Assembly: GCA_002269645.1 (NCBI GenBank)
Contig: NIVC01000283.1
Location: 124,001 to 188,000 of the forward strand
Direction of reading: 5' to 3'
DNA length: 64,000 bases
Origin: Macrostomum lignano
Taxonomy: Eukaryota
In this document: positions 18,099 to 55,577 of the stretch, in pieces
Layout: every line of letters starts with the position of its first letter
Position numbering within the stretch: the first letter of the stretch is position 1
Position numbers and translations under genes: made by a program
The notes under the pieces: model-generated
Told to the model about the DNA's origin: nothing
The model's input: only the letters and a program-made list of their open reading frames with translations
Database searches by the model: none

Positions 18099-18150
18099 TG
18101 TGAAGTACCTGTGGTTCTCGGGTTGTTGATCGGGCAGTCTCGGGCTCCGG

Positions 18151-24107: not shown

Positions 24108-24113
24108 TAATTT

Positions 24114-24130
24114 TGGAGGTCCCACCGAGA
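24114..24130 (+). promoter_or_regulatory. Primer binding site complementary to the tRNA-Gln 3' end
   Basis: TGGAGGTCCCACCGAGA is the reverse complement of ...UCUCGGUGGGACCUCCA and lies 6 nt after the LTR. Confidence 0.85.
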
Positions 24131-30845: not shown

Positions 30846-31081
30846 TCCCTGCCCTTTCGGGGGGTGTAGTCTGCTGCCTGTGATGTGCTCCTCCGGGGTG
30901 GCTTCTGTTGCTTTGGGGCGGTGCCCTTCCGGTGTGGTTGCTCTTTGTTTTTTTCTGTGTTGCTGGCCGTTGTGGTGGGTTGCCGTGGTTATGTTTGGCT
31001 GTGTTGTGTGGTGCCTGGTGCCGTGCTGTGCGCTCCTCTGTGTGGCTGGTTATCTGTTGTTCCGTTGTCTGGTGCGGGTTT

Positions 31082-31497
31082 CTGCTGGCGGCAGTCGGCC
31101 GCTTCATCATCTGCTGGCGGCAGTCGGCCGCTTCATCAACTGCTGGCGGCAGTCGGCCGCTTCATCATCTGCTGGCGGCAGTCGGCCGCTTCATCAACTG
31201 CTGGCGGCAGTCGGCCGCTTCATCATCTGCTGGCGGCAGTCGGCCGCTTCATCATCTGCTGGCGGCATCCGGCCGCTTCATCATCTGCTGGCGGCATCCG
31301 GCCGCTTCATCATCTGCTGGCGGCAGCCGGCCGCTTCATCATCTGCTGGCGGCAGCCGGCCGCTTCATCATCTGCTGGCGGCATCCGGCCGCTTCATCAT
31401 CTGCTGGCGGCATCCGGCCGCTTCATCATCTGCTGGCGGCAGCCGGCCGCTTCATCATCTGCTGGCGGCAGCCGGCCGCTTCATCAACTGCTGGCCG
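31082..31497. repeat. 29-bp tandem repeat in the retrotransposon 3' UTR (CTGCTGGCGGCAGTCGGCCGCTTCATCAT)
   Basis: Period is 29 (31082, 31111), about 14 copies. Confidence 0.93.
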
Positions 31498-31881
31498 CGC
31501 AGTGCAAGTTCTTGGCGCGGTGTTCGAGTCTGAGGCGTCTGCAGCACGGGTCCCGTCGATGCTGTCAGTAAATTTTGTCATAATTATCAATATTCAGTTG
31601 TTACTACTTATTCGTTATTAGGCTTCCTTGTTCGCGCGAATATCACATTTTACTCCTCTATCCAAATGCTAGCTGCGCATGCGTTTAAAAATCAATCAAT
31701 CCTTGTTGCTGTTTCGTTGGAATGTTCAATTTTACTCCATCGTTCTACTTTGCGAAATTATCTTCAATTGTTCAAAAAATTCGATTTTTGCAACGCGGCC
31801 CAATCGTACCAAATTCATTTTGAAAAACAATGTTCGAAATCACTACTTGAAGTAGAAAGCGCTTCGTTTTTTTGTTTTTTT

Positions 31882-31895
31882 GGGAGAGAGGCGAG
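31882..31895 (+). promoter_or_regulatory. Polypurine tract
   Basis: GGGAGAGAGGCGAG immediately precedes the 3' LTR. Confidence 0.85.
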
Positions 31896-32419
31896 TGTGA
31901 CGTTGGTGGTTCTTTTATTCTCCCAGTTCGTCGATTAATATCTACTAAAAAGTATTTAATATGTACTTTATTTATATCAATTGGTTTCACTTTTATGTTT
32001 ATTGAAACTAGTAAGCAATGCTTTGTTTTACTGCATTAAATAGTTATATTTAACATTTTGAATTCTGTGGCTTCGGAGAAGACTGAGCGTGGTGTGCGGC
32101 TGCTGTTCCTATCGCCAGTCATTTGATTTTAGTAAACACTGATTGATTTTAGTAAACACTGAAAAAAACAGTAGTTCAAGATCGCTCTCAATTTAGTAGT
32201 GTTACCCACTAAGGTCATCTTCGAAGCCATTCCATTGACACTGCAATTGTTCGTTACCAGTTAGCATCAGCAATAACCACTACATGTGTAACCTGCAAAT
32301 ATACATAATCCGTAATCGAATTATCGGCGCCGTCAGTTATCGTCACCACTAACTGTGTGTTTACTCACTACTTTAATAGCAGCCCGTCAGCACGCGAACT
32401 CGGACCAGATATCGTCACA
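31896..32419 (+). repeat. 3' LTR
   Basis: Direct repeat of 23584-24107, followed by the TCAT TSD. Confidence 0.96.
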
Positions 32420-33034
32420 TCATATTCACCTGCTTTCACCTGTTGAAGGTCCAGAAGCACCGCCTGGGTGAGCTGATGTAGGTACATGTGCTCGACATGC
32501 TGAGGAAATTTAGAGGCTTGTGAAGACTGCACTGAGGCGCCTCCAGCGTAATTATTTCATCGAAAAAACTGACTGATTGAATTCTAACTCTCATAAAGAT
32601 TGCATCACATTGCAGGCTTTTAATTTTGTTTATCGTCAGTTTACTGGCTGAAGTGGGAGTCCAACTAAATTGAGTCACAGTATTGAAAATAAAGTGTGGA
32701 AGCAAATAGCACCAGACTTGGTTGCGTAACCAAATTGTTGACCAATTAATGGAGACTGATACTGACTGACAAAAAAAAAACTTTTACGTCATAAATACTT
32801 CATGTGACAACAATTAGGATCGAGTAACTAAGCCAACTTAATGTGAGTTTTGAATTAAAAATGCTACGATGATTCATGCCGAGAGCTTAGATGTGAAAAG
32901 ACTTGAACTGATAAAGCAGCTACGGGAGTTCAATTTTTAAGTGTATATATACTCTTATTAAATAATTGTTAAAGATAAAAACTAGAAAGTCAATAAAAAA
33001 ATAAAAAAATAAAAGAAAAATCTTGTCAAACACA

Positions 33035-36122: not shown

Positions 36123-37148
36123 ATGCAGATCTTTGCTTTCATTTTCTTGCTTTTGGCAGCTGCCGCTGCAGTTGCGCAATCCCGTGTGAGCTGCCACAGA
36201 CGCTGGTGCCAGTACCGGATGCCGCACTGCCTCGACGAGACCTCGGCGCTGACTCGATGGAGCTCGCAAAGCCTGCAAGCCTGCGTGTTGAAAGCGAGCA
36301 GCGAGCCTGACGACCTGGTGCTTGAGTGGAACAAGCAGACAGGTGTGTGCTCGCTCTTCCACTACCAGCAGGTGTGTCGCACGATGCAGGCAAGCGGTGC
36401 CGTCGCGATCGGAGCTGGGGCTGCAGTGCAGCAGTCGCAGTGCTCGGTGTATCGCGCGTTGTCGTTGGCGAGCTGCGACGCCTCGCTCGACGCTCAGCTG
36501 GTGGGCGTGTGGCTGGCAGGTGGGAGCAGCCGGTTCAGCAACCTGGTGTGCCAGAGCGACAGCGGCGGCGGCGGCAGCCACCGACTGGAGAGCGCGAACC
36601 TGCAGTGGACTGAGGAGGGCGCCCGCTTCGACGGGACATCGTCGTACGCGCTGCTCAACGACAGCCGCTTCGTCTCGAGCGACCCGTCGGCCAGCTTCAC
36701 ATGGCTGATGAGGCTCAAGAGGGAGCCGAGGATTCAGCCCTTCATGGAGGCTGTGCCCTGCTCGGATTATTCTACACTCGGACCTCACCTGTGGGAGTTC
36801 GATGCGATTGGAAGGATGTACTTCAGCACCATTAGCACCACTGTTAACCGGCATTTTACGATGCTCTCTAATTTGAACGCAATTTCTGCCAACGCGAGCA
36901 CAATGATTGACATCGGAGTCTCCATCGGATCAAGCCAGTCGTTCCATGCCTTCTACCTGAACGGAGAATTTATCAGCACAGCTTCAGGCTCGAACGATAG
37001 GACTTCGTTCCCGTGCTACATCGTGTCTGTTGGCCGCCGGTTCGCTGAGGGCGGCGCCTTCCTGCAGGGAGTGGTGCGGGCTGTGGCCATCGCCAACGCC
37101 TCGCTGACTAAGCAGCAGATGAGAGACTTCTTCAGCAGCGTGCCGTAG
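36123..37148 (+). CDS. Secreted protein, copy A: signal peptide + Cys-containing PAN-like region + LamG/ConA-like (Laminin_G_3-type) domain, 341 aa, intronless
   Basis: Hydrophobic N-terminus. ARFDGTSSYA...FYLNG...VGRR...FLQGVVRAVAIANASLT is a LamG/pentraxin-like signature. It is a paralog of three other copies. Confidence 0.85.
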   Translation: MQIFAFIFLLLAAAAAVAQSRVSCHRRWCQYRMPHCLDETSALTRWSSQSLQACVLKASSEPDDLVLEWNKQTGVCSLFHYQQVCRTMQASGAVAIGAGAAVQQSQCSVYRALSLASCDASLDAQLVGVWLAGGSSRFSNLVCQSDSGGGGSHRLESANLQWTEEGARFDGTSSYALLNDSRFVSSDPSASFTWLMRLKREPRIQPFMEAVPCSDYSTLGPHLWEFDAIGRMYFSTISTTVNRHFTMLSNLNAISANASTMIDIGVSIGSSQSFHAFYLNGEFISTASGSNDRTSFPCYIVSVGRRFAEGGAFLQGVVRAVAIANASLTKQQMRDFFSSVP

Positions 37149-38009
37149 ACTTTTAAGTCCGAATAAATTTTACGCTTGTATCAATAAGAGCTTTTGAATA
37201 GCTTCGTTAATACGAGTACTTTGGTACTGGATTGAGTCTTTATAGTCAGCTCGTACATGGTTTGACTGTTTTTTTATTACAACACTAGGGGCTTATCAGG
37301 ATAATAACATCTTATAACCGCTTTTTGTGCGACAACAGTTTTTGAATCATAAATAAAAAAACAGTCGATGTTTGAACCGCTTTGAATTCCAAAATGGTCT
37401 CTTTACCTATATTGATAAACATTTCTGGAGGAGTGACATCGAATTCAGAGTGGGTGACAGATTGACCTGCGAGTGGAATGAGAAATTAGCTTCTAAACAT
37501 AAGTCAGGATTTTAACCTGAAAGTTCTCACGACTTGTGTAGGAGAAAAAAGCTGAATTTAAACAATAAGTCATGTTAACAGAGTTACAGAGGCCGGCAGG
37601 AACATGAATCATTGTAATAAGTTGTGTGAAGTTGTCATAAGATGCTTCTTTCTCCTCGCTGACACATGCAGTCGTGCGTTGCTCTGGAGTGAGACCAACC
37701 TAGCAGGCACATGCTTCCGCTGCAGATCACGGACCAGTGATCTTATGAATGGTGATCTTGAATATTAACACAGTGTCTTCTGCAAGCTCTCACGCCTTTC
37801 AGAAGTCCGTTGAAGACGCGGCAGATTTGACTTCGGGACACTGTCCACAGCCTGTTGGACATCCCGCATGTGCTTTAGTCACTCCAACGCTGATTTTCCT
37901 GATTTGAAGAAGTCTGCAACTTCTCTTTGTTTCACCATTTCTTGATAGTGTAAATAGATGGCTTGAGATAAAAAGATTAAAATGATGAATTGATGAACAG
38001 ATATGTTGC

Positions 38010-38139
38010 TCTATTAGTGTGTGGTAATTTTCAAATCACTGTGAAGCAATCTGTGGAGATAAGTGTATTGCTCAAGGACACAAATTGTTCTATGGGGATC
38101 GGGAATCGAACCCCGACCCTCTATAACCACTAGGCTACA
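38010..38139 (-). mobile_element. tRNA-derived SINE remnant
   Basis: The minus strand has an A-box TAGCCTAGTGG and a B-box GGTTCGATTCC with shortened spacing. These are followed by GTGTCCTTGAGCAATACACTT, a motif resembling the conserved central domains of animal SINEs. Confidence 0.45.
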
Positions 38140-40009
38140 ACCTCTCTTAAAGTGCATGGGCTCCACGTGCATTTAGTCAAGCTTACGCTCAAAGATTAGT
38201 AGCTAAAGATGCAGAAGTAACTTTTTGTTTTTGACATGAAAGTTTCTGTCTCATTTAGAGCATGGTGAGAGGGCGATACGAATAATTTCTCTGGTGATCG
38301 CACAGTGAGTTCAGATATTCCGGGAGAAGGGTTCGAAAACTACGGCTCTTACCAGTAAAACTTAATCATTTCAATTCACTTGCTTGTTGGAGAACCTGAC
38401 AATAAGTGCAGAACAAGAAGGTTCTGTGTAATAATTTAATCTTCATCTCTGTCTGATTACATTGCATTGGTATTTTAATTAATCTCTTCTTTTAGAGAAA
38501 GCTAATTTTTTGTTAGACCATTCGCATGCCCTTTAGTACAGACAATCTGTTCTATACCCAACAGTGAGTAGCAGGACTCTAAAGCTGATTCCAAGCTCAC
38601 TCTCAACACCAAGGCTGTAAATTGTGATACTGTGTGACTTTAGTTTATGGCAATACTCTTCTATTTAGTATGTAAGTATTGCAATATACACTGGCTTGTG
38701 GGCATGCAAGAATGCTGATACGCCAAGGCTAATGGGAGAATTGCTGAGATGTCAAGGCATACGGAGGGAATGGCTGAGATGTCAAGTCCACTATAATAAA
38801 ACTGTAAATTTTCTTATTAACTCTCACTAATCCATCCAAAAATAGCAGCTAAAAAGTAAACTTTAACAACATGAAGTCAAAAATTTATTTATTTTTCAAA
38901 AAAATTTAAACTTCGCAAATTATTTTGCTAGTAAGTAACTATTGTAGTTTGTAGATTTAAAATAGTATTAAAATAATTTTACCATATAGTTAACGCCATT
39001 TTGTAATGGGTAATGGCTTTCAGTTATATTATTTTCTCTGTCACCATTTTTTCAGTGCAGAAGAAGCCTTTTAAGGTCCTGGATCAGTTTCAAGGTCTTT
39101 CCTTTTCATCAGCTCGTTCAAAGTTCTATTATCATATGCTACTCGCAACTTTTTTAACCACTATTTAATAGTTTTGATTCACATTCTTATCATGCTACTG
39201 TTAGTAGGCGATCGCTTATGCATGTGCTCTGAATTTGCGTTACCTGCCGCTGTCAACGTCATTATTGCTCACGTGATCATTTGCTTGTTGATTATGCCGA
39301 GAAGCTTCAAGATGACCGACAAGCGAGGTGAGTCACCAAAACGACACTCTGTCGCCGCGCCGGCCTGGTCCGTCTATTGTGCCATCGGCGACTCCACTGA
39401 TGCATCTCCTGGACCTGTTGACTCTGCAGGCAACCTACCAACGAGCTCATACGCGAACCCCAATTCGATAGTTTTGTTGCTGAGTCTGATGGACTGCGCA
39501 GAATTCTGTTGTGGATTGGATTAGCCCTTCGAGTCTTGAAGACAGAGGGAAAGCCTGCGGTCGTTAGTGACTTCGTTTGAGAGTTAAGATATAGTTGCAA
39601 AAATCCAAGGCTAACATTGAAATTGCATGGAACAGTGAGGGTACGAATCTTTACATGTATCCTATATGTCAGGTCCGTACTGGACCATCATCATCCGTAA
39701 AATAGGAAAGTGATACTGATAGGATAAAAGTAGCGTCGGCGTCGATTCTATCTACACATTGCAGAAGCAAACACCAGTCCTGCCTTAACTGGCTTCTGTT
39801 GAGCAAACGCGCCAAGCAGCAACATCAAGCAAATAGTGAAAGCTAAAAGCTGCAGTGACTCCGAGAAACTGACTATTGCTCGAGCTAAATCCGCAACGTC
39901 TGCAAACAGACCGCTGATAAAACATGGAAGAAAGCCGAAAAACTCTCTCGGTACTGATAGCTTTGAGTCGTGAAACAAGTATTTTCTCTAATACACAGTA
40001 AATGGAAAA

Positions 40010-41035
40010 ATGGTTGCTGCACTGCCGGTAATTCTGTTAGCCTGGACTTCTGTAGCTACGGTTCTGACTGCAGGCTGCAGCAGACGCTGGTGCCAGTACC
40101 GGATGCCGCACTGCCTCAACGAGACCTCGGCGCTGACTCGATGGAGCGCGCAAAGCCTGCAAGCCTGCGTGTTGAAAGCGAGCAGCGAGCCTGACGACCT
40201 GGTGCTTGAGTGGAACAAGCAGACAGGTGTGTGCTCGCTCTTCCACTACCAGCAGGTGTGTCGCACGATGCAGGCAAGCGGTGCCGTCGCGATCGGAGCT
40301 GGAGCTGCAGTGCAGCAGTCGCAGTGCTCGGTGTATCGCGCGTTGTCGTTGGCGAGCTGCGACGCCTCGCTCGACGCTCAGCTGATGGGCGTGTGGCTGG
40401 CAGGTGGGAGCAGCCAGTTCAGCAACCTGGTGTGCCAGAGCGACAGCGGCGGCGGCGGCAGCCACCGACTGGAGAGCGCGAACCTGCAGTGGACTGAGGA
40501 GGGCGCCCGATTCGACGGGACATCGTCGTACGCGCTGCTCAACGACAGCCGCTTCGTCTCGAGCGATCCGTCGGCCAGCTTCACGTGGTTGATGAGGCTC
40601 AGGAGGGAGCCGAAGATCCAGCCCTTCATGGAGGCGGCGTCCTTTGATGATTTGCCACGAATGGGGCCTCACTTTTGGGAGTTTGGCGAGCCCCGTCAGC
40701 TGTATTTTCATCCGGTTGGGAGTCTGCAGCCCACCGTCTTTTCCGCCACAAACCTGCTGCCCAGCGAGAGTTCCGCCTGGATCAATGTCGGCTTTGTGCT
40801 GGGAAGCTCCCGAGTGGCTTCTCGGCTGTTCTTCAACGAGTCCTTTGTGCCGACCAGCTCAGCTGACAAATCGTTCAGCATGCCAAACCGCTGCTGTCGG
40901 ATGTACATCGGTCACAGGCCGAGACCTGAGGACTCTCTTTCTCGTTTATTAAGCGGAGTTGTGCGTGCGGTGGCCATCGCCAACAGGTCCATGAGTGCCG
41001 AGGAGATCCAGCAGTTCTTCAGACTCGTCGCCTGA
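40010..41035 (+). CDS. Secreted PAN-like + LamG-like protein, copy B (divergent C-terminal ~135 aa), 341 aa
   Basis: Core is near-identical to copy A up to IQPFMEA. The rest of the LamG half is distinct (GPHFWEF...LFFNES...IGHR...LSGVVRAVAIAN). Confidence 0.85.
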   Translation: MVAALPVILLAWTSVATVLTAGCSRRWCQYRMPHCLNETSALTRWSAQSLQACVLKASSEPDDLVLEWNKQTGVCSLFHYQQVCRTMQASGAVAIGAGAAVQQSQCSVYRALSLASCDASLDAQLMGVWLAGGSSQFSNLVCQSDSGGGGSHRLESANLQWTEEGARFDGTSSYALLNDSRFVSSDPSASFTWLMRLRREPKIQPFMEAASFDDLPRMGPHFWEFGEPRQLYFHPVGSLQPTVFSATNLLPSESSAWINVGFVLGSSRVASRLFFNESFVPTSSADKSFSMPNRCCRMYIGHRPRPEDSLSRLLSGVVRAVAIANRSMSAEEIQQFFRLVA

Positions 41036-41687
41036 TGCTGGAGCTATTTTTCTTGACGTCGATCTAAACTCAATTAATTTTATGTCTGAGAAATTTGATA
41101 AAAAAATTAGTATTGTTAAGTGACCTCTTGGACGCACCAAGATTTAATCTTTGGTCCCTGCATCAAGGATATGTCTTGAAGCTGTGCTTTTTTTAAAACA
41201 ACCTATTGTTTATTCATGAATAATTTTTGGAGAAATGTAAATTTTTTCTTACTTTCGTAGATGTGCGATAATAGTGTTATGATTGAAAGTGTGTTATGTA
41301 ATAGCCATACTGTCTTGAGTGCCATGTTACTGTTCAACATTACAGACATGGTTGTAGACAGATAATAAACAAGTTGTTTTTCTCCCAACCCGCTCACGCG
41401 AGGCGTTGTAAACTCGCTCATTCTATTTGCAGACTTGTGAGCAGGGAGAGAATGGGTGTCATGAGTGCCTGTCATGATCTATCCCAGACCCATCTCAACC
41501 TGAGTCTTCTACCCAGATTGAGGCTGACTCTGTACAGTGGTACTCTTAGGGCAGGCACTAAATATCATGCTGGGAGAAGACCCCGAGGCTGCATATCAGC
41601 ATCTGCAAAGTGTAACCATTTCTTGGACTAAAAAACTGAAGACAATAATTAGAAAAGAACACTGACCGATGCAAAATGAAGAAGGCA

Positions 41688-41802
41688 CGGATGCTGCACT
41701 GACTGAATGGGACCTCGGCGCTGAATCGATGGAGCTCGCAAAGCCTGCAAGCCTGCGTGTTGAAAGCGAGCAGCGAGCCTGACGACCTGGTGCTTGAGTG
41801 GA
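41688..41802 (+). pseudogene. Short fragment of the same gene family (core region)
   Basis: CGGATGCTGCACTG...GCAAAGCCTGCAAGCCTGCGTGTTGAAAGCGAGCAGCGAGCCTGACGACCTGGTGCTTGAGTGGA matches the shared core. The flanks are unrelated. Confidence 0.85.
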
Positions 41803-42315
41803 TCATCCTAGTAAGGTCACACTGTGTCACAACTATATGGTCATTGAAAGCTCCAGGCTCTTGACCTGCGAAGTACAACATTACTTCAGCATAAGCTTCC
41901 TTTTTTTCTCGTTATTTTTTTACAGGTAAGTCCTACTCTGTCGATTTTACAAAGAACTAGACTTTATTTACATTACATTTATCTTTTAGCAAATAGAGGA
42001 AATCCACCTTGGTAAATTGATCTCTTCGCAAGTTGCCGCATGCTTACACAGTACGAGCTATTTAACATCGAGTGTTGGATAGCGATATGACGTCTCAGTC
42101 ACGTGCAAAGGTGACGTCAATTTTTTACACTCTGTTTTGAACACTAGCCTGCAGTGCTACTTGACTAGAAAAGCTGCAAGCATGGCAGAAACTGTTTAAA
42201 AATCACTGCAGCACACGAAATTTCCTAGACAGTTTGTTGAAATGATTGATACAGGATTATCGTCTCCTGCTCCATGACTGAAACATTTTACGCAGCGGTA
42301 CAGAAGCAATTCAAT

Positions 42316-42510
42316 TTAGTAATGAGAACTTTCGATGGCCACAGTTTGCATGACGTCGTCAGGAAAACATTCTACAGGTCTACTCTCAGTAGCCAGAAAA
42401 AAGTTTTGGTTTTCTCGTAGATCTTTTAGGGTAAGTGCAAAAAAGTTGTGAATAGCTAAGTGATTGTAAGCTGGCAAAGAGTATGTGAGATCTAAACAGT
42501 CTCTGAGCAC
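42316..42510 (-). mobile_element. Possible CR1/L2-type non-LTR retrotransposon ORF2 3' remnant
   Basis: NFFAL...VECFPDDVM...ESS loosely resembles the CR1/L2 C-terminal FFxL...WNxLPxxVV motif. Confidence 0.3.
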
Positions 42511-43126
42511 GATGGAGCGATGAGGTTCTTGAACCTCGTCGAATGAATCAATCTAAGTTGCTCATCTTCACACAGCGCGCGCATCGGGACTCAAACGTGC
42601 TTGTAATATCGAATCATGAAGTGTCTACGCTGCTCAAGAACTCAAGGCTGGAGTTCTTCAAAACAGAAGACCGAAAAGACAATACAAGTTAAAAAGAAAC
42701 AATCTTTTAATTCATGGATTATACAGAAGCAAAAAATTGCATCGCAACAACAATAGATTCTGATTCACCCATGAAGCCACGGAAACTCTTCCGGTTTAAA
42801 AACTGTGCATCAACACTGCAACAGGCTTCTTCTCACACAATCACTGACAAAAAGCTTATTCAATTGACTGCATTGATTCCATTGTCTGCACGAGAGCTTA
42901 AAGCAATACAAGCGCAAGCATACGGAACTCCAAAAAAACAACGAAAAAGCAGCCGCCTTGATGGCAAAAAGAAGCCAACCAACCAACGGAAGTGCGGTGC
43001 CCACATTGTCAGATGATCTGGAAAAGCGTAGAAAATTGTCGAGAAGAACACAAGTTTTTTAAATCTACAATGGCAGAAAACTCTATAAAAGAAGTCGTTT
43101 CCCCGCATATCGCAAAGACTCAAACC

Positions 43127-44158
43127 ATGATGATGCTCTCTTCCTTGATGGTAATTCTGACTTTTGGTGCAGTCATTGGAGCCTCTGCAAGCTGCCGCAG
43201 ACGCTGGTGCCAGTACCGGATGCCGCACTGCCTCAACGAGACCTCGGCGCTGACTCGATGGAGCGCGCAAAGCCTGCAAGCCTGCGTGTTGAAAGCGAGC
43301 AGCGAGCCTGACGACCTGGTGCTTGAGTGGAACAAGCAGACAGGTGTGTGCTCGCTCTTCCACTACCAGCAGGTGTGTCGCACGATGCAGGCAAGCGGTG
43401 CCGTCGCGATCGGAGCTGGAGCTGCAGTGCAGCAGTCGCAGTGCTCGGTGTATCGCGCGTTGTCGTTGGCGAGCTGCGACGCCTCGCTCGACGCTCAGCT
43501 GGTGGGCGTGTGGCTGGCAGGTGGGAGCAGCCGGTTCAGCAACCTGGTGTGCCAGAGCGACAGCGGCGGCGGCGGCGGCGGCAGCCACCGACTGGAGAGC
43601 GCGAACCTGCAGTGGACTGAGGAGGGCGCCCGCTTCGACGGGACATCGTCGTACGCGCTGCTCAACGACAGTCGCTTCGTCTCGAGCGACCCGTCGGCCA
43701 GCTTCACTTGGCTAATGAGGCTCAGGAGGGAGCCGAGGCTTCAGCCCTTCATGGAGGCTCTGCCCTGCTCGGATTTTTCTGCATTCGGACCTCATCTGTG
43801 GGAGTACGATGCGATCGGAAGGATGTACTTCAGCACGATTAGTGCTACTGCCAACCGGCATTTCGAGATGTTTTCCAACTTGAACGCAATTTCTGCCAAC
43901 GCGAGCACAATGGTTGACATCGGAGTCTCCATCGGATCAAGCCAGTCGTTCCATGCCTTCTACCTGAACGGGGAATTTATCAGCACTGCTTCAAGCGGAC
44001 TGAAACACAGGACTTCGTTCCCGTGCTACATCGTGTCCGTTGGCCGCCGGTTTGCTGAGGGCGGCGCCTTCCTGCAGGGAGTGGTGCGGGCTGTGGCCAT
44101 CGCCAACGCCTCGCTGACTAAGCAGCAGATGAGAGACTTCTTCAGCACTGTGCCGTAG
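43127..44158 (+). CDS. Secreted PAN-like + LamG-like protein, copy C, ~343 aa
   Basis: Probable start CAAACCATG at 43127 gives the signal MMMLSSLMVILTFGAVIGASA. Core as in A and B; C-terminus is A-like. An in-frame upstream ATG also exists. Confidence 0.85.
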   Translation: MMMLSSLMVILTFGAVIGASASCRRRWCQYRMPHCLNETSALTRWSAQSLQACVLKASSEPDDLVLEWNKQTGVCSLFHYQQVCRTMQASGAVAIGAGAAVQQSQCSVYRALSLASCDASLDAQLVGVWLAGGSSRFSNLVCQSDSGGGGGGSHRLESANLQWTEEGARFDGTSSYALLNDSRFVSSDPSASFTWLMRLRREPRLQPFMEALPCSDFSAFGPHLWEYDAIGRMYFSTISATANRHFEMFSNLNAISANASTMVDIGVSIGSSQSFHAFYLNGEFISTASSGLKHRTSFPCYIVSVGRRFAEGGAFLQGVVRAVAIANASLTKQQMRDFFSTVP

Positions 44159-44664
44159 ACAATGTTTAAAACGTATCTTAAGGTCAATTTGAAGCTGCAG
44201 TAAAGCGTTCTGGATGGCCCTGGATGTACGCTCTCATCGAACAGATAGATTAACTAATTACTAATCAAAATGCAAAAAAGTGTTGTACGTTTTTTGTGAT
44301 GCTAGACTTTTTTAGTGAAAGTGGCTGGCAGAAAATATAGAAGATTTCTAAACAATTTCCCGAGTTTATTGGTTCGATATTTTTACACTCGCAATCTCGA
44401 TGACAGAAAGCGCTGGACAAGCGAGTCAAAATCGAATAATTTTTCAAAGCCAACAAGAAAACAATGCTGTGTATGAAAGCGTGCCTATCAGTTGTTGGCT
44501 ATTTGACATGTTTAACTTCTTTTTTGAAACTTCGAGTTTTAATTAAATAGACTTTTCAACCGAATCAGGTTGGAAAAACAGACACAAGAGAATAACTTAA
44601 TTATCAGCTAGCAAAAATCGCTGCACTTTACTTTTCAGATTTATATATAGGCTCCAGGCCATTG

Positions 44665-45626
44665 GGCCGGTGTCATTGTCATTATTAAGGCCGGTGTCAT
44701 TGCCTCTATTGCCGGTGTCATTGTCTCTAGTGCCGGTGTTGTCATTGTCTCTAGTGCCGGTGTCATTGTCTCTAGTGCCGGTGTCATTGTCTCTAGTGCC
44801 GGTGTCATTGTCTCTTGGGCCGGTGTCATTGTCTCTAGTGCCGGTGTCATTGTCTCTAGTGCCGGTGTCATTGTCTCTAGTGCCGGTGTCATTGTCTCTA
44901 GTGCCGGTGTCATTGTCTCTAGTGCCGGTGTCATTGTCTCTAGTGCCGGTGTCATTGTCTCTAGTGCCGGTGTCATTGTCTCTAGTGCCGGTGTCATTGT
45001 CTCTTGGGCCAGTGTCATTGTCTCTATTGCCGGTGTCATTGTCTCTAGTGCCGGTGTCATTGTCTCTATTGCCGGTGTCATTGTCTCTAGTGCCGGTGTC
45101 ATTGTCTCTTGGGCCGATGTCATTGTCTCTAGTGCCGGTGTCATTGTCTCTAGTGCCGGTGTCATTGTCTCTTGGGCCAGTGTCATTGTCTCTATTGCCG
45201 GTGTCATTGTCTCTAGTGCCGGTGTCATTGTCTCTAGTGCCGGTGTCATTGTCTCTAGTGCCGGTGTCATTGTCTCTAGTGCCGGTGTCATTGTCTCTAG
45301 TGCCGGTGTCATTGTCTCTTGGGCCAGTGTCATTGTCTCTATTGCCGGTGTCATTGTCTCTAGTGCCGGTGTCATTGTCTCTAGTGCCGGTGTCATTGTC
45401 TCTAGTGCCGGTGTCATTGTCTCTAGTGCCGGTGTCATTGTCTCTAGTGCCGGTGTCATTGTCTCTTGGGCCAGTGTCATTGTCTCTTGGGCCGGTGTCA
45501 TTGTCTCTAGTGCCACTGTCATTGTCTCTAGGGCCAGTGTCATTGTCTCTAGTGCCGCTGTCATTGTCTCTGGTGCCGCTCTCATTGTCTCTAGTGCCAG
45601 TGTCATTGTCTCTAGTGCCGGTGTCA
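44665..45626. repeat. 21-bp minisatellite (GTGCCGGTGTCATTGTCTCTA) between copies C and D
   Basis: About 45 tandem units. It is open in several frames because the unit length is a multiple of 3. Confidence 0.95.
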
Positions 45627-46130
45627 TAGGGCTGTCTCAAAAGTCACAAACACGCATAAATTTAAAATAGGGAATGATAGAAACTTTAAAAATCTGAAAT
45701 AAGAATCAATAAATTTGATTATGGGACGAGACGAAGTAATACGAGCTAATATGTGTTTTACTACTTTAAACAAACAGTCCGAGAATTTCGGACACAGTCG
45801 CAGAGTCCGTAGAGTCGCAAAACGGATACTCAAAATTCTTTTGACAACACTTAGGTCTCGAAAATGAGGTCGCAACGCCCTTGGTTAACAAAACGGATAC
45901 CACTGCGCTCACGATGCTGGGGCACACTGAAAACAAGCGTAAATAGAGTGATCTGACGAATATCAGAGAGCTAAGAATCTTGATCACCCACTGATACATT
46001 GAGTCTAAAAACCTTGCATTTTAACCTTTTTATGTTTTCAATTCTAAGGTTTCTTTTGGACACCAAAGCAGTATATACAAAATTATCAAAAAGTCTTTTA
46101 GACAGCGGGAGAATATTCGTCATTAAAATT

Positions 46131-47150
46131 CTACGGCACAGTGCTGAAGAAGTCTCTCATCTGCTGCTTAGTCAGCGAGGCGTTGGCGATGGCCACAGCC
46201 CGCACCACTCCCTGCAGGAAGGCGCCGCCCTCAGCGAACCGGCGGCCAACGGACACGATGTAGCACGGGAACGAAGTCCTGGGTTTCAATTCGCTTGAAG
46301 CAGTGCTGATAAATTCCCCGTTCAGGTAGAAGGCATGGAACGACTGGCTTGATCCGATGGAGACTCCGATGTCAATCATTGTGCTCGCGTTGGCAGAAAT
46401 TGCGTTCAAATTAGAGAGCATCGTAAAATGCCGGTTAACAGTGGTGCTAATGGTGCTGAAGTACATCCTTCCAATCGCATCGAACTCCCACAGGTGAGGT
46501 CCGAATGCAGAAAAATCCGAGCAGGGCAGAGCCTCCATGAAGGGCTGAAGCCTCGGCTGCCTCTTGAGCCTCATTAGCCAAGTGAAGCTGGCCGACGGGT
46601 CGCTCGAGACGAAGCGACTGTCGTTGAGCAGCGCGTACGACGATGTCCCGTCGAAGCGGGCGCCCTCCTCAGTCCACTGCAGGTTCGCGCTCTCCAGTCG
46701 GTGGCTGCCGCCGCCGCTGTCGCTCTGGCACACCAGGTTGCTGAACCGGCTGCTCCCACCTGCCAACCACACGCCCATCAGCTGAGCGTCGAGCGAGGCG
46801 TCGCAGCTCGCCAACGACAACGCGCGATACACCGAGCACTGCGACTGCTGCACTGCAGCTCCAGCTCCGATCGCGACGGCACCGCTTGCCTGCATCGTGC
46901 GACACACCTGCTGGTAGTGGAAGAGCGAGCACACACCTGTCTGCTTGTTCCACTCAAGCACCAGGTCGTCAGGCTCGCTGCTCGCTTTCAACACGCAGGC
47001 TTGCAGGTTTTGCGAGCTCCATCGAGTCAGCGCCGAGGTCTCGTTGAGGCAGTGCGGCATCCGGTACTGGCACCAGCGTCTGCTGCAGCCTGCAGCGAAA
47101 ACCACAGCAGAAGTCCAGGCAAACAGACTTACTGGCAGTGCAGCAACCAT
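46131..47150 (-). CDS. Secreted PAN-like + LamG-like protein, copy D (inverted), 339 aa
   Basis: B-like signal peptide and 5' flank, shared core, A/C-like C-terminus. Confidence 0.85.
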   Translation of the reverse strand: MVAALPVSLFAWTSAVVFAAGCSRRWCQYRMPHCLNETSALTRWSSQNLQACVLKASSEPDDLVLEWNKQTGVCSLFHYQQVCRTMQASGAVAIGAGAAVQQSQCSVYRALSLASCDASLDAQLMGVWLAGGSSRFSNLVCQSDSGGGSHRLESANLQWTEEGARFDGTSSYALLNDSRFVSSDPSASFTWLMRLKRQPRLQPFMEALPCSDFSAFGPHLWEFDAIGRMYFSTISTTVNRHFTMLSNLNAISANASTMIDIGVSIGSSQSFHAFYLNGEFISTASSELKPRTSFPCYIVSVGRRFAEGGAFLQGVVRAVAIANASLTKQQMRDFFSTVP

Positions 47151-49064
47151 TTTTCCATTTACTGTGTATTAGAGAAAATATGAGCGTATTGGCTTCAATA
47201 CTCAAAGCTATCAGTATTGAGAGAGTTTTGGGGGCTTTCTTCCATATTTTACCCCTGTCGTTAATGGGCTGGACCATTAGCGGTCTGTTTGCAGATGCTG
47301 CGGATTGGCTTTCCGTGTTCTGGGATGCAGGAGATGCTGCCCACTGTTGGAAAATCATCTGCAATTTTTTTTATTTTCTTTCGGATTGTAAGTTTCTCGG
47401 AACTCACTGCAGCTTTTAGATTTCACTATTTGCTTAATGTTGCTGCTTAGGGCGTTTGCTCAACAGAGATCCTACAAACTGCTCCGATGTGTACTCAGTT
47501 TAGGCAGGACTGGTATTTGCTTCTGCAGTGCGCAGGAGCAAATAGGATTATTTTATCGGAGCAGCAGCAGCAGCATTCTATCAGCATTACGGCTCTAGTT
47601 TAACCACAATGGACCAGTAGACAACACGTAGCATGCGTTTTTTATGCATGCAGTTTCCGAACTGTGTTCAGTGCATCAGAGACACGGAAACAAAACTATC
47701 GAATTGGGGTTGGCGACCTTTGACTTTGAATGAATGGGTCCACTTCCGATATGCTAGAAGAGTTGAAGGATTGGTAAGGCACGGATACTAGAAGTCTGAA
47801 AGCCCTGCTGCAATCACCAGGAGGGGCCATCCTCACTCGTCAAATAAGTTATGGCTTCTCGTGAAACAAAATCTCGAACTTCAAATAAAATAGGCTGCCC
47901 TTCAACTAAAAAATGCAGCCTCCTAAAATGGAGTGGCGCCTACTTTTCAATACCGTCCCACCTCTAAATAATAATCTTGGCGACGTCCCTGGAAAACTCA
48001 CGGCCCCTGAACTGGCGAGAGGTGTCGTGTGCTCTGTAGGAGCTCAGAAGTGGCTCCAGGTTGCCGCAGAGGGAGGGACCACACAAGACCTCAAAAGCAC
48101 TGACCCAAAGACCTTAAGAAATCAAAGTAGGACAACTGGCTTATGATGTTCACCTGACAAGTATCTCACTGTACTGTAGATACTACAACTCGAGAATGAA
48201 TTATTGAATTATTGCAAAGCGGGATCGGGATCCCGATGGTCAATCCCGGGATTTAGGCCTAATCAAAATCTTGGGATCCCGGGATTTTATTCCCCAATAC
48301 TATACTAGCTGTCATCAATTAAAAATGAAAGACTTTGAAGGGAGGGTAGATTTATTCAGTTTTATCTTTGGTTTATAACAATTTATTCCTTTAAAATCGA
48401 ACTTGCTAAAACTTTTAATCAATTTTGCATTCACTACTTCGCCACAAGTTTTGTATTCACAGTAATGTTGTACCTTCTATTCTAATCGTTTTGTGCACCT
48501 ATTGGAATTCGCTGTCTAATTTAAATTATTCTTACTTTTATCGAATTCAAAGTTCAGCGCATCATTTTGGGGTCTGTGTCGTGACTTTCTTAGTCATTTC
48601 TTCAGTTCATTTGCACTTTTGTCTCCGTATCTCTGTTTTCTCTCCCTCTCTGTCTAGCTCAGTCTTGTTATTCTTATCTCTCCCCCTCGCTACCTCTGAT
48701 TGGCTCTTCAATCTCGCCTATTTTCTCAGTCGCGCAGTCCACCCCCCCTACTTTGATCTGCGCTGCAGTAAACCCAGGCCCCTAATTGCTTAACCAAATA
48801 AAATGCCCACCCGTTTGGGCTCTGCGCACCAAATTTAGAATGTAGACCAGATGGTTCCTTTTATTTTTCTCTACATCACTTTTTTGTATTTTTTCCTGTC
48901 ACTTCGTCAATGCGACGAGTTGACGACGTAACGCGCTTTTAGAGTTTTGTATAGTCCGCAGAATTACATTTAAATTTTTGTTGTGAATAGATAGCTTAGC
49001 TATAGTTGAGAGTACTATTGTCGTTTTTTATTTCTCCAAATCACACATTGCAAGTTTGCGGCAT

Positions 49065-50028
49065 TTGGGTGTAAGGGCTCAGTTTGGGTGTGTCAGGGCT
49101 CAGTTTGGGTGTCAGGGCTCAGTTTGAGTGTCAGGGCTCAGTTTGAGTGTCAGGGCTCAGTTTGGGTGTCAGGGCTCAGTTTAGGTGTCAGGGCTCAGTT
49201 TAGGTGTCAGGGCTCAGTTTGAGTGTCAGGGCTCAGTTTGAGTGTCAGGGCGCAGTTTGGGTGTCAGGGCTCAGTTTGAGTGTCAGGGCTCAGTTTGAGT
49301 GTCAGGGCTCAGTTTGGGTGTCAGGGCTCAGTTTAGGTGTCAGGGCTCAGTTTGGGTGTCAGGGCTCAGTTTAGGTGTCAGGGCTCAGTTTGGGTGTCAG
49401 GGCTCAGTTTGGGTGTAAGGGCTCAGTTTGGGTGTCAGGGCGCAGTTTGGGTGTCAGGGCGCAGTTTGGGTGTCAGGGCTCAGTTTGGGTGTCAGGGCGC
49501 AGTTTGGGTGTCAGGGCGCAGTTTGGGTGTCAGGGCGCAGTTTGGGTGTCAGGGCTCAGTTTGGGTGTCAGGGCTCAGTTTGGGTGTCAGGGCGCAGTTT
49601 GGGTGTCAGGGCTCAGTTTGGGTGTCAGGGCGCAGTTTGGGTGTCAGGGCTCAGTTTGGGTGTCAGGGCGCAGTTTGGGTGTCAGGGCTCAGTTTGGGTG
49701 TCAGGGCTCAGTTTGGGTGTCAGGGCTCAGTTTGGGTGTCAGGGCTCAGTTTGGGTGTCAGGGCTCAGTTTGGGTGTCAGGGCTCAGTTTGGGTGTCAGG
49801 GCTCAGTTTGGGTGTCAGGGCTCAGTTTGGGTGTCAGGGCGCAGTTTGGGTGTCAGGGCTCAGTTTGGGTGTAAGGGCTCAGTTTGGGTGTCAGGGCTCA
49901 GTTTGGGTGTCAGGGCGCAGTTTTGGTGTCAGGGCTCAGTTTGGGTGTCAGGGCTCAGTTTGGGTGTCAGGGCTCAGTTTGGGTGTCAGGGCTCAGTTTG
50001 AGTGTCAGGGCTCAGTTTAGGTGTCAGG
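49065..50028. repeat. 19-bp minisatellite (GGGTGTCAGGGCTCAGTTT)
   Basis: Period is 19 (49101, 49120). Confidence 0.95.
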
Positions 50029-50394: not shown

Positions 50395-50998
50395 CAGGGG
50401 CGTCGACACCGGGAGGGGGGACAGGGGATATGTGTCCCCCCCAGTAAAAGCCACCCCACCTTGTGACCCGATGTGAAAATCAATAATTTTGTTTCAGGAC
50501 ACCAAACTGAGTTTTTGCGGCGCCAAAATGAGAGCCTGTCTCTTGCGCCAAAATGAGTTCTTGCGGCGCCAAAATGAGAGCCTGTCTCATGCGCCAAAAT
50601 GAGTTCCTGTGGCGCCAAAATGAGTGCCTGCGGCGCCAAAATGAGTGCCTGTGGCGCCAAAATGAGTGCCTGCGGCGCCAAAATGAGTGCCTGCGGCGCC
50701 AAAATGAGAGCCTGTCTCTTGCGACAAAATGAGTGCCTGCGGCGCCAAAATGAGAGCCTGTCTCTTGCGCCAAAATGAGAGCCTGTCTCTTGCGCCAAAA
50801 TGAGTGCCTGCGGCGCCAAAATGAGAGCCTGTCTCTTGCGACAAAATGAGTTCCTGCGGCGCCAAAATGAGTGCCTGCGGCGCCAGAATGAGTGCTGAAA
50901 ACACCTATTCAGAAAATAATGAATCTCTAGGAATTCATTCATGTACATGTGAAATTCTTGGATTTGTCCCCCTACAATAAAATCCTTGCCGATGCCCC
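50395..50998. mobile_element. MITE-like element with short TIRs and an internal GCGCCAAAATGAG repeat (50500-50895)
   Basis: Left end CAGGGGCGTCGACA; right end TGCCGATGCCCC (reverse complement GGGGCATCGGCA). TSD not identifiable. Confidence 0.45.
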
Positions 50999-51315
50999 CC
51001 CCCCCGCATTCTCTAATTGAGTTTTAATGGAACAGAACAGCTTGATAAACTCAGTGAGAGAGCCTTGGACAAAACTCGGACTTTGCATCATTCGTGCACT
51101 GGCGGGTGTACGAGCTACGCAGCCAACTCCAGCTCACTGTGAGAGGAAAGGTTTCGACAGTCTAAAAATAGAACATGAAAAAACTGTTCTTGCCATATCA
51201 GCTCATGAGCTGAAACCAGTGTAGCTTACTGTCGCTGAGTATATAAGCATTTTTAGTGAGCACTTGGCCTTGTCAATTTCTCGCAAAAATAATCAACTGT
51301 CACCGCTCTGAGACA

Positions 51316-54300
51316 ATGATGATCTCAGCTCTTGTCTACACTGGCGAAGGCGCTGACGCTGAGGCTCGCGAGGACCTCCAGTCATTCCTGACCGACTACT
51401 TTGCCAATCGACGTCGGGAGTGTCGAATCGAGACCACAGCCGACGCCGCCGAATTCCAGGACTTGACGACGCTGGGCCGGTTTCAGCTGTTCGCCTTTCC
51501 CGGCGGCTTCGACCTCGGCTTCGTGCGCCTCCTCGGAGCCGCCGGCATGGCTAACTTGGCCCGCCGCGTGAGGTCTGGCAGCTGCGGCTACCTCGGCATG
51601 TGCGCCGGCGCCTACTTCGCCTGTCGGGAGATCGAATTCGCCAAAGGCGATCCCGAACTGGAGGTCCTAGGCTCGCGGCTCGGTCTGTACAGGGGCCTAG
51701 CGGTGGGCCCGGTGTTCCCCGGTTTCGACTACAAGTCGCTGGCCGGAGCGCGAGTTGTTGAGAATGCCACCGTATTCGAGGGTGACAATAAAGTGCACGT
51801 GTACTTTAACGGAGGACCCAAGTTCGTGCCCGACAATCAGGACCCCGCTGCTGCTGCTGCCGACAGCGCCGAGGTGCTGGCGAGGTACACGGAGGAGGAA
51901 GCGGCTGGTCAACCTGCGGTTGTGCTGGCGAAGTGCGGCCTTGGTGAGCTCTGGCTTGTACATTTACGAATAAAGTACTCACTGTACTACTAAATGGCAT
52001 AATATTTAACCAATCTGCTTGAGTTGCATTGATTATTTGCGATAAATGATAACAGTTCGGTTCAGGCCACGGTCTACTGAGATGTAAAGAAGGGCGCCAC
52101 CTGCTTTGACCAGTTGTATCCATATGATCCCAGATCTGAAGATTCCTAGATTTATAGAATCCTAGACTAGATCTACAGAAAACTAGGTCTACAGAATCTT
52201 AGTTCTATAGAACCATAGCCTAGATCTACAGTATCCTATATAGCTCTATAGAACCATAGACTAGATCTACAATATCCTACTAGCTCTATGGAACCATAGA
52301 CTAGATCTACCGTCTACAGAATCCTACTAGCTCTATAGAACCATAGACTAGATCTACAGTCTACAGAATCCTACTAGCTCTATAGAACCATAGACTAGAT
52401 CTACAGAATCCTACTAGCTCTATAGAACCATAGACTAGATCTACAATATCCTACTAGCTCTATGGAACCATAGACTAGATCTACAGTCTACAGTATCCTA
52501 CTAGCTCTATAGAACCATAGACTAGATCTACAGTCTACAGAATCCTACTAGCTCTATAGAACCATAGACTAGATCTACAGTCTACAGTATCCTACTAGCT
52601 CTATAGAACCATAGACTAGATCTACAGAATCCTACTAGCTCTATAGAACCATAGACTAGATCTACCGTCTACAGAATCCTACTAGCTCTATAGAACCATA
52701 GACTAGATCTACCGTCTACAGAATCCTACTAGCTCTATAGAACCATAGATTAGATCTACCGTCTACAGAATCCTACTAGCTCTATAGAACCATAGACTAG
52801 ATCTACAGTATCCTACTAGTACTAGCTCTATAGAACCATAGACTAGATCTAGTCTACAGAATCCTACTAGCTCTATAGAACCATAGACTAGATCTACAGT
52901 CTACAGAATCCTACTAGCTCTATAGAACCATAGACTAGATCTACAGTCTACAGAATCCTACTAGCTCTATAGAACCATAGACTAGACCTACAGTCTACAG
53001 AATCCTACTAGCTCTATAGAACCATAGACTAGACCTACAGTCTACAGAATCCTACTAGCTCTATAGAACCATAGACTAGACCTACAGTCTACAGAATCCT
53101 ACTAGCTCTATAGAACCATAGACTAGACCTACAGTCTACAGAATCCTACTAGCTCTATAGAACCATAGACTAGATCTACAATATCCTACTAGCTCTATGG
53201 AACCATAGACTAGATCTACAGTCTACAGTATCCTACTAGCTCTATAGAACCATAGACTAGATCTACAGTCTACAGAATCCTACTAGCTCTATAGAACCAT
53301 AGACTAGATCTACAGTCTACAGTATCCTACTAGCTCTATAGAACCATAGACTAGATCTACAGAATCCTACTAGCTCTATAGAACCATAGACTAGATCTAC
53401 CGTCTACAGAATCCTACTAGCTCTATAGAACCATAGACTAGATCTACCGTCTACAGAATCCTACTAGCTCTATAGAACCATAGATTAGATCTACCGTCTA
53501 CAGAATCCTACTAGCTCTATAGAACCATAGACTAGATCTACAGTATCCTACTAGCTCTATAGAACCATAGACTAGATCTAGTCTACAGAATCCTACTAGC
53601 TCTATAGAACCATAGACTAGATCTACAGTCTACAGAATCCTACTAGCTCTATAGAACCATAGACTAGATCTACAGTCTACAGAATCGTACTAGCTCTATA
53701 GAACCATAGACTAGACCTACAGTCTACAGAATCCTACTAGCTCTATAGAACCATAGACTAGACCTACAGTCTACAGAATCCTACTAGCTCTAGAGAACCA
53801 TAGACTAGATCTACATGCAGTCTACAATATCCTACTAGCTCTAGAGACCCATAGACTAGACCTACAGTCTACAGAATCCTACTAGCTCTAGAGAACCATA
53901 GACTAGATCTACAGTCTACAATATCCTACTAGCTCTAGAGAACCATAGACTAGATCTACAGTCTACAGAATCCTACTAGCTCTAGAGAACCATAGACTAG
54001 ATCTACAGAATCCTACTAGCTCTATAGAACCATAGACTAGATCTACAGTCTACAATATCCTACTAGCTCTAGAGAACCATAGACTAGATCTACAGTCTAC
54101 AGAATCCTACTAGCTCTATAGAACCATAGACTAGACCTACAGTCTACAGAATCCTACTAGCTCTATAGAACCATAGACTAGATCTACAGTCTACAATATC
54201 CTACTAGCTCTAGAGAACCATAGACTAGACCTACAGTCTACAGTATCCTACTAGCTCTAGAGAACCATAGACTAGATCTACAGAATCCTACTAGCTCTAT

Positions 54301-55577
54301 AGAACCATAGACTAGATCTACAGTCTACAATATCTTACTAGCTCTAGAGAACCATAGACTAGATCTACAGTCTACAGAATCCTACTAGCTCTAGAGAACC
54401 ATAGACTAGATCTACAGAATCCTACTAGCTCTATAGAACCATAGACTAGATCTACAGTCTACAATATCCTACTAGCTCTAGAGAACCATAGACTAGATCT
54501 ACAGAATCCTACTAGCTCTATAGAACCATAGACTAGATCTACAGTCTACAATATCCTACTAGCTCTATAGAACCATAGACTAGATCTACAGTCTACAATA
54601 TCCTACTAGCTCTAGAGAACCATAGACTAAATCTACAGTCTACAGAATCCTACTAGCTCTATAGAACCATAGACTAGATCTACAGTCTACAATATCCTAC
54701 TAGCTCTAGAGAACCATAGACTAGATCTACAGTCTACAGAATCCTACTAGCTCTATAGAACCATAGACTAGATCTACAGTCTACAGAAACCTACTAGCTC
54801 TAGAGAACCATAGACTAGATCTACAGTCTACAGAAACCTACTAGCTCTTTAGAACCATAGACTAGATCTACAGTCTACAGAAACCTACTAGCTCTATAGA
54901 ACCATAGACTAGATCTACAGTCTACAGTATCCTACTAGCTCTATAGAACCATAGACTAGATCTACAGAATCCTACTAGCTCTATAGAACCATAGACTAGA
55001 TCTACAGTCTACAGAATCCTACTAGCTCTATAGAACCATAGACTAGATCTACAGTCTACAGTATCCTACTAGCTCTATAGAACCATAGACTAGATCTACA
55101 GAATCCTACTAGCTCTATAGAACCATAGACTAGATCTACAGTCTACAGAATCCTACTAGCTCTAGAGAACCATAGACTGGACCTACAGAATTCTACACTT
55201 AGAGCTAAAGCAAACTAGATCTTGAGAATGGGCTCAATACTCTATGCCAGTGTGTCAGCAAGATGTCATGTACGGTACGAGATCTTCGCGAGCTCATGAT
55301 TCGAAAATTCTCAGAATCAGTCACCGTACATGTCAAGAGGCAGTGCGTGCTGATGCAGATCCCTCTAGCACACTCAGCAACCATCCCCAATGCTTCAGGC
55401 GGCGCCCTGCTATTCGGCTGTCACCCCGAGATGGACAAAAAGCAGCTGGAGTCCAGCTCGGATCCCAGGCTGAGAGAAATTTTTACTCAGCTGAGCAGAG
55501 GTGCCGAGGACAGGCGTCAGGCCACCTACAGGATGCTGGACGAGCTGATGAAGATTGTTGATGCGGCTGGGCATTGA
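51316..55577 (+). CDS. Stand-alone BPL_N (biotin-protein-ligase N-terminal, class I GAT-like) protein. Exons 51316-51943 and 55399-55577, ~268 aa
   Basis: Motifs LVYTGEG, FPGGFD, YLGMCAGAY, VYFNGGP and VLARY. The donor GTGAGC at 51944 joins the acceptor cttcAG at 55397-55398 in phase 1, giving GLGGALLFGCHPE and then a stop at 55577. Confidence 0.85.
52150..55190. repeat. 47/40-bp minisatellite (CTAGCTCTATAGAACCATAGACTAGATCTACAGTCTACAGAATCCTA) filling the BPL_N intron
   Basis: Tandem units with or without a 7-bp AGTCTAC segment. Confidence 0.95.

Follow-up and report, generated by a model that had tools for sequence, protein, structure and literature searches.

How does a single reading frame come to be almost identical to its neighbours along one stretch and unrecognisably different from them along the next? 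The question is raised by a gene cluster at 36.1-47.2 kb of a 64,000-nt window of Macrostomum lignano contig NIVC01000283.1, the window being the whole stretch of DNA analysed here. The open reading frame (ORF) listing of the window gives four full-length single-exon ORFs of 339-343 amino acids (aa), named A, B, C and D, together with a 118-bp pseudogene fragment. We consider it probable that this tandem cluster, with its four functional-looking genes and a relic, represents a secreted flatworm family subject to interlocus conversion and to the re-pairing of modules.

The cluster and its segments

Segment identities divide each ORF into a signal region, a core and a distal part. Gene A (36123-37148, forward strand, 341 aa) consists of a type A signal (36123-36191), the core (36192-36752) and a type 1 distal part (36753-37148). 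Gene B (40010-41035, forward strand, 341 aa) has a type B/D signal (40010-40075), the core (40076-40636) and a type 2 distal part (40637-41035). Gene C (43127-44158, forward strand) encodes 343 aa from an MMM start and carries a type C signal, the core (43193-43759) and a type 1 distal part (43760-44158); its frame is also open upstream as far as 42992, and hence its real start is uncertain. Gene D (46131-47150, 339 aa) lies on the reverse strand, inverted with respect to A-C, and carries a type B/D signal, the core (46530-47087) and a type 1 distal part (46131-46529). The pseudogene fragment (41688-41805, forward strand) corresponds to core codons 32-70 and contains an in-frame TGA; a tblastn search of the A-D proteins against the whole window found no further copy beyond this piece.

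Self-BLAST and sliding-window comparisons revealed that DNA similarity among the copies starts at the cysteine codon directly after the signal peptide, i.e. at the first mature codon, and that among A, C and D it stops at the stop codon itself. Outside the mature coding sequence (CDS) there is no alignment between copies, save for ~215 bp of 5′ flank common to B and D (39795-40009 on the forward strand for B; 47151-47467 on the reverse strand for D, comprising 47151-47251 and 47385-47467). The section of the B flank at 39918-40009 runs on into the CDS at 91% identity to D, and the section at 39795-39876 is 90% identical to 47385-47467 of the D flank. The first 17 nt past the stop codon are alike in A and D.

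The core covers alignment codons 25-213 (~560-570 bp, reaching '...QPFMEA'), with identities across all pairs of A-D of 97.1-98.7% at the nucleotide level and 96-100% at third positions. Its sole indel is a length difference in a (GGC)n run that encodes 3-6 glycines (approximately 36564-36575 in A, 40448-40459 in B, 43565-43582 in C and 46710-46718 in D). Nucleotide identity in the signal region is 40-52% across types and 76% for B-D. Among A, C and D the distal parts agree at 91-96% of nucleotides, and B is 46% identical to these three at the nucleotide level and 30% at the amino acid level. An earlier inspection of the letters, hereafter the sequence-only reading, had described four intronless paralogs of ~340 aa plus a fragment, three signal-peptide types (A, B/D and C), two distal types (A/C/D versus B) and a constant-plus-variable layout, and these are borne out by the ORF listing and the segment identities. 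Its near-identical core of ~550 bp likewise stands as regards identity, and is slightly longer than had been thought. The same reading had raised the possibility of haplotype or assembly duplicates; A-D are not such duplicates, given the abrupt loss of similarity at the limits of the CDS and flanks that cannot be aligned. On the evidence of the sequence, A-D are distinct, real paralogs with mosaic ancestry, attributable to conversion or crossover.

Exchange between paralogs and the rival explanations

Synonymous (dS) and nonsynonymous (dN) divergence were obtained as Nei-Gojobori estimates, per segment within the ORFs, and dS was found to differ at least 30-fold inside single ORFs. In every pair of A-D the core dS is 0.008-0.06, compared to >1 in the signal region (with the exception of B-D, 0.41). 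The distal part of B is saturated with respect to A, C and D (dS >1.6, dN about 0.7), and the distal parts of A, C and D have dS values of 0.065-0.20 among themselves, with omega (dN/dS) of 0.2-0.6. Since the flanks, the signal peptides and the distal part of B are saturated, the paralogs are old.

The core holds all three 2:2 site partitions (AC/BD, AD/BC and AB/CD). The distal part of D is itself a mosaic, A-like at codons ~225-265 and C-like at ~284-306 (A/C/D triplet maximum chi-square 31.4, permutation p≈5e-4). The pseudogene fragment is free of coding constraint because of its in-frame stop; its eight mismatches are unevenly spread (Fisher p=0.0014), seven of them falling within the first 38 nt, which leaves an 80-nt remainder about 99% identical to the genes. 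Third-position G+C content (GC3) falls from 0.84-0.86 in the core to 0.67-0.70 in the distal part and to 0.38-0.52 in the signal region, with a flank GC of 0.40-0.46; the difference between core and distal part has p=7e-4 in gene A and p=2e-4 in gene B. GC-biased gene conversion is expected to leave just such a raised GC3 in the core. Furthermore, D joins a B-type 5′ flank and signal to an A/C-type distal part followed by the A-like first 17 nt after the stop, and therefore at least one crossover inside the core re-paired the 5′ and 3′ modules. As far as sequence comparison can tell, the incompatible sites, the D mosaic, the partly refreshed pseudogene and the core GC3 indicate interlocus gene conversion or crossover, and the same signals argue against assembly duplication and codon-level constraint. 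Together with the dS contrast they support the proposal of the sequence-only reading that concerted evolution maintains the layout.

Could a few one-off events have sufficed? A recent duplication of one gene, with a distant paralog then contributing by one or two unequal crossovers, would produce the chimeras and leave the core alike from recency. Only four copies are to hand, the 5′ flank common to B and D fits a discrete duplication or crossover, and the 17 nt past the stop shared by A and D point the same way. However, the A, C and D flanks are unalignable although their CDS dS is 0.07-0.2, so that the duplicated unit would be exactly the mature CDS, three times. Three incompatible partitions within 570 bp, the fine-scale A/C mosaic of D and the partial refreshment of the pseudogene also count against such a history, as does a metagenome gene pair (described below) with the same blockwise alternation of dS. 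We therefore judge a few one-off events an unlikely account of the cluster, if the best of the rivals considered in these two paragraphs. The lack of introns and the closeness of similarity limits to CDS limits would also suit CDS-only cassettes that spread by retroposition or transposon capture behind different promoters and signals, with no conversion involved, and the window is indeed rich in retroelements, with an intact Ty3/gypsy element at 23.6-32.4 kb. Yet similarity stops at the stop codon, with neither similarity in the 3′ untranslated region nor a poly(A) tract, the copies have no common flanking repeat, and three independent 5′ truncations at one identical codon are improbable. As cassette spread moreover leaves the divergent distal part of B and the mosaics unexplained, we regard it as highly unlikely.

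Selection at the nucleotide level might have frozen the core, for instance through an overlapping gene on the antisense strand, through an RNA element or through extreme bias in codon use, given that antisense ORFs of 160-273 aa lie over every core and that core GC3 is very high. The antisense ORFs are, however, in the sense codon register, with starts and ends that differ among copies; they are a by-product, because 85% G/C at third positions in this same register precludes stop codons. An Rfam scan of the window returned no match, the non-coding fragment is near-identical across 80 nt as well, and constraint alone does not produce incompatible partitions, which makes nucleotide-level selection a most improbable cause. 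An assembly or haplotype artefact, in which collapse or duplication would have turned one or two loci into the present copies, would draw on the highly repetitive nature of the window, and Macrostomum-type genomes are repeat-rich and partly polyploid. The chance of this is close to negligible for copies that have unique flanks, differ in signal peptide (three kinds) and in distal part (two types), include one inverted member and stand on a single contiguous sequence free of Ns. We also considered, and rejected, an intron or splice site at the edges of the core: each ORF runs through without a break, the junction lacks a conserved GT, and genomic homologs are uninterrupted too.

Protein architecture and the wider family

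Each protein starts with a hydrophobic segment of 21-24 residues ending in small residues, and no second hydrophobic segment was found in any of A-D. Cysteines number 11 in each protein, an odd count, alongside 3-4 N-x-S/T sequons, and the proteins are predicted to be secreted. The signal peptide is followed by a ~120-residue six-Cys domain, a Gly/Ala-rich linker and a ConA/LamG-type beta-sandwich. Pfam gives a sub-threshold Laminin_G_3 (PF13385) match to gene A residues ~170-332, covering profile positions 1-149 of 151; there was no PF13385 match for protein C in the Pfam scan. Across the family, Laminin_G_3 is matched in 11 of 23 members at E<=1 (best E=1.2e-5), and one family entry, P0013, has a precomputed PF13385 match. 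Motifs typical of LamG_3 are located in the C-terminal ~180 residues ('FDG..s', 'ftW.lr.k' and a final 'G.vr.vai.n..lt..Ei..ff').

An AlphaFold2 (AF2) model based on an 18-sequence alignment has a mean local confidence (pLDDT) of 69 and a predicted template-modelling score (pTM) of 0.61, with pLDDT of 75-91 over most of residues 160-340. Foldseek found 210 PDB matches to this model at E<=0.001. The best 50 of the 210 are all lectin-like jelly-roll domains (probability 1.0, identity 8-16%, ~200 columns aligned), either the lectin domain of trans-sialidase or a jelly-roll subdomain from a bacterial protein of very large size. In the model, then, the C-terminal fold is a ConA/LamG-like jelly roll. 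The Foldseek likeness reflects a common fold and not family membership, and ligand-binding residues cannot be mapped onto A-D from solved structures at 8-16% identity. A profile of the family gave weak matches (E=0.004-0.009) to four chains of the CBM40 type (sialidase lectin modules) among the PDB sequences, over part of the domain. The term lectin-like, used in the sequence-only reading, is thus appropriate at the level of the fold but not beyond it. Kinship to clostridial-type neurotoxin/NTNH, which occupies the top Foldseek rows, was rejected: A-D are 339-343 aa long, Laminin_G_3 is their only Pfam match, and what is common is the fold of one jelly-roll subdomain. The large proteins heading the Foldseek list (>1000 aa) have protease and translocation domains, whereas A-D have no catalytic or translocation parts. 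With the Laminin_G_3/ConA-like superfamily, A-D share an end-to-end profile match, motifs and the jelly-roll fold; they differ from it by sub-cut-off scores, by the low identity to solved structures and by a novel Cys-rich N-terminal fusion.

The six cysteines of the N-terminal ~120 residues are conserved family-wide. This domain has no Pfam match in 23 members, and its profile has no PDB sequence match at E<=10. PAN/Apple, a candidate identity for the N-terminal domain, is not supported, with no PAN match at E<=1 in the 23 members and no PDB match. The domain search of each half that had been proposed from the letters therefore yields a sub-threshold LamG_3 for the distal side and neither a Pfam nor a PDB match for the N-terminal side. 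The variability that had been ascribed to a distal LamG half is real, but the division into halves is not: the domain starts at around residue 160-170, inside the constant core, and the variable part is the last two thirds of the LamG-like domain.

An exhaustive HMMER search gave 49 matches, 21 of them below 1e-10. Among 20 proteins looked up, the named family members are all from Macrostomum lignano; most of these M. lignano models are chimeric or mis-named, and PAA88331.1 is a further one. Public M. lignano models of the family should hence be used with caution in annotation. The remaining members come from ~1-kb contigs of JGI or ENA metagenomes. Long proteins from outside the family account for the three weakest matches looked up; only one of these is named, a bacterial LamG-like protein from a Candidatus Omnitrophota metagenome-assembled genome. 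One JGI sample is a DNA-metagenome co-assembly from brackish microbial mats of the Étang de Berre (PMC8605020). The copies from this sample are accordingly genomic and intronless and belong to an uncultured animal living in the mats. Among public sequences, near-identity is confined to 33 aa (97%) of P0001, a chimeric M. lignano G-protein-coupled receptor (GPCR) model from UniRef in which residues 345-432 represent a frameshifted piece of the family core, its later part in another frame, fused to the GPCR model. Taken by itself, this match would place the window in M. lignano or a near relation. As the GPCR part of P0001 is absent from the window, further core fragments are scattered elsewhere in a Macrostomum genome. 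Literature searches returned nothing on the family. Without a dedicated Pfam entry, without literature in these searches and with only mis-named M. lignano models, the family is undescribed, as the sequence-only reading had supposed, and it is restricted to Macrostomum-type flatworms, having been seen so far in Macrostomum and one uncultured relative.

The switch from constant to variable sequence is not confined to the window. In the metagenome subfamily, 80-90% DNA similarity extends from the 5′ end to the TWLLRLKR codons and is then lost, and in the M. lignano subfamily P0003/P0006/P0050 the proteins are identical through LLRMKRQP and divergent right after. In the window cluster and the metagenome subfamily the switch is thus located at a TWLxRLKR motif inside the jelly roll, ~40 residues into it, so that the constant unit is made up of the Cys domain and the first sandwich strands. 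Family column entropy steps from ~0.7-1.0 to >2 bits at residue ~200; variability in loops exceeds that in strands only slightly (2.24 versus 1.87 bits, p=0.016). Comparison of the family sequences thus places the constant/variable break in two other subfamilies, three in all. Paralogs of the metagenome subfamily carry one or other version of a dimorphic cassette (SGVEWTKEGA or INVTFTSEGA), which is shuffled among them, and two full-length metagenome genes have dS values per 30-codon block of 0, 0.81, 0.17, 0.03, 0.77, 0.70 and 0.12, followed by saturation. The signal peptide of that subfamily is its most conserved block (100% identical, dS=0). Variable signal peptides, put forward in the sequence-only reading, are therefore found in the window cluster but not in the metagenome subfamily, where the signal is the most constant part; signal diversity is a peculiarity of the window cluster, and the best explanation for it is that conversion tracts reach their 5′ limit there.

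The constant/variable junction coincides exactly with an R-x-K/R-R motif (RLKR, RLRR, RMKR or RFKR), found at codons ~197-200 in A-D (for instance 36711-36722); both outer Arg of the motif are near-invariant throughout the family. The motif resembles a proprotein-convertase site, and the AF2 model puts it at the end of a beta-strand. Four contigs of JGI 3300040801 (L003, L005, L006 and L007) all start within 50 nt of the constant block. This is as expected, because short-read assembly breaks at repeats, and it means that family size is under-counted in metagenome data.

Proposed mechanism, setting and known systems

The mechanism we propose starts from what the sequence shows. Interlocus gene conversion has acted repeatedly: in all four genes it overwrote the first ~570 bp of the mature CDS, and among A, C and D it extended over the mature CDS in full. 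At least one crossover within the core has placed the promoter-plus-signal module of one type in front of the other distal module, giving D. Conversion tracts presumably halt where homology has already gone, leaving sharp edges at either end, the first mature codon on one side and the stop codon on the other. The recurrence of the break after the TWLxRLKR strand would imply that selection tolerates, or favours, divergence only distal to this strand. The constant Cys domain and first strands may constitute a common scaffold, or a module for partner binding or oligomerisation, and the divergent rest of the sandwich could present varied binding surfaces for extracellular ligands, possibly glycans. 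A recognition, adhesive, effector or reproductive role is putative. The mechanism itself is textbook; the family and the split of a single domain into constant and variable parts are new.

Several observations weigh against this account. With four copies only, a few discrete crossovers and continuing homogenisation cannot be cleanly separated, and the rise in GC3 could partly come from codon preference. Diversification of the distal part in the sense of positive selection, as envisaged in the sequence-only reading, is not supported: the omega values among A, C and D give no sign of it in their distal part, and B is saturated. The PF13385 scores (18.1, 19.3 and 15.6 bits) lie below the gathering cut-off of 27.6, and AF2 confidence for the N-terminal domain is moderate to low. 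The exact sequences of A, B and D have no record in public collections, and that the genes are active in the animal is something we infer.

In a bolder alternative, the core would act as the module through which a germline shuffling system recombines the genes. Paralogs would be kept crossover-competent and promoter-plus-signal and distal modules re-paired, with the exchange point fixed just after the R-x-K/R-R strand; flatworms would thereby have a combinatorial repertoire of their own, made up of recognition proteins secreted for use in immunity or mating. We find this decidedly unlikely. In a sub-variant of the same idea, the R-x-K/R-R motif could be a convertase site that parts the constant from the variable segment. 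Under interlocus conversion with module re-pairing, the reading we prefer, the cluster offers a compact natural example of gene conversion and divergence partitioning a single protein domain. To our knowledge, no diversified extracellular recognition families have been described in free-living flatworms. Transgenesis and RNA interference exist for Macrostomum laboratory lines, and should the family be related to immunity, adhesion or reproduction, the cluster would be a tractable target for Macrostomum genetics.

The window is animal DNA, with a Ty3/gypsy element, exons for fibrinogen-domain, adhesion-GPCR and biotin-protein-ligase proteins, and several satellite arrays. The Ty3/gypsy long terminal repeat (LTR) retrotransposon (23584-32426) is apparently intact and young, with LTRs of 531 bp (23584-24114 and 31896-32426) that are 99.6% identical, a gag-like ORF (24878-25855) and a pol ORF (26223-30845, 1540 aa) with protease, reverse transcriptase, RNase H and integrase. 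A Fibrinogen_C ORF (20798-21370, reverse strand, E=1.9e-25) represents another lectin-type gene ~15 kb from the cluster; P0024, an M. lignano model holding a family member, is named after a fibrinogen domain. Ordinary animal genes flank the cluster, as seen from exon-like ORFs for the N-terminal domain of biotin-protein ligase (51256-51993, forward strand, E=1e-38) and for the HRM and GAIN domains of an adhesion GPCR (63195-63866, reverse strand). Three minisatellites, one between genes C and D (44666-45627, 21 bp x 45 copies) and two further along (49064-50028, 19 bp x 51 copies; 50502-50895, 21/46 bp x 17.6/8.7 copies), yield long spurious ORFs in several frames. A ~6-kb satellite array at 7342-13542 has nested periodicities and copies that are 95-98% identical, and tandem repeat arrays at 52132-55197 and 1-2468 (84-89% identity) have a strongly skewed base composition. 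A repeat with a period of ~40-80 bp is found in two places (16758-18100 and 19400-19651) and overlaps a 461-aa Cys-rich ORF (16824-18209) with a weak Stig1-like match.

Secreted recognition families diversified by conversion or recombination occur in other invertebrates, including the snail FREPs, sea-urchin Sp185/333 (Transformer) and amphioxus VCBPs. The cluster resembles these in its clustered secreted paralogs, in its near-identical and divergent blocks and in recombination between paralogs, and a gene with a fibrinogen domain is found close by in the window. The domains of A-D are nevertheless unrelated, with no immunoglobulin superfamily (IgSF), FBG or chitin-binding domain, and the constant/variable border falls inside one domain rather than between domains. 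We know of neither immune induction nor somatic diversification for the window family. A FREP-type immune lectin was rejected as an identity for A-D, since Pfam finds neither an IgSF nor a fibrinogen-related domain in them. The CDS-limited concerted evolution of globin, hsp70 and opsin duplicates is similar in that tracts end with flanking homology, tract dS is low, flanks are old and GC3 is raised. It differs in that only part of the CDS is common to all copies in the window cluster, which keeps two deeply divergent functional distal types and whose break recurs in other subfamilies. Conotoxin superfamilies, finally, combine a constant signal with a hypervariable mature peptide, and are matched by the metagenome subfamily, in which a signal with no synonymous divergence stands beside blocks with dS from 0.8 to saturation. 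In the window cluster, by contrast, the signal peptide is the least conserved part, and the products are folded proteins of ~340 aa rather than short peptides.

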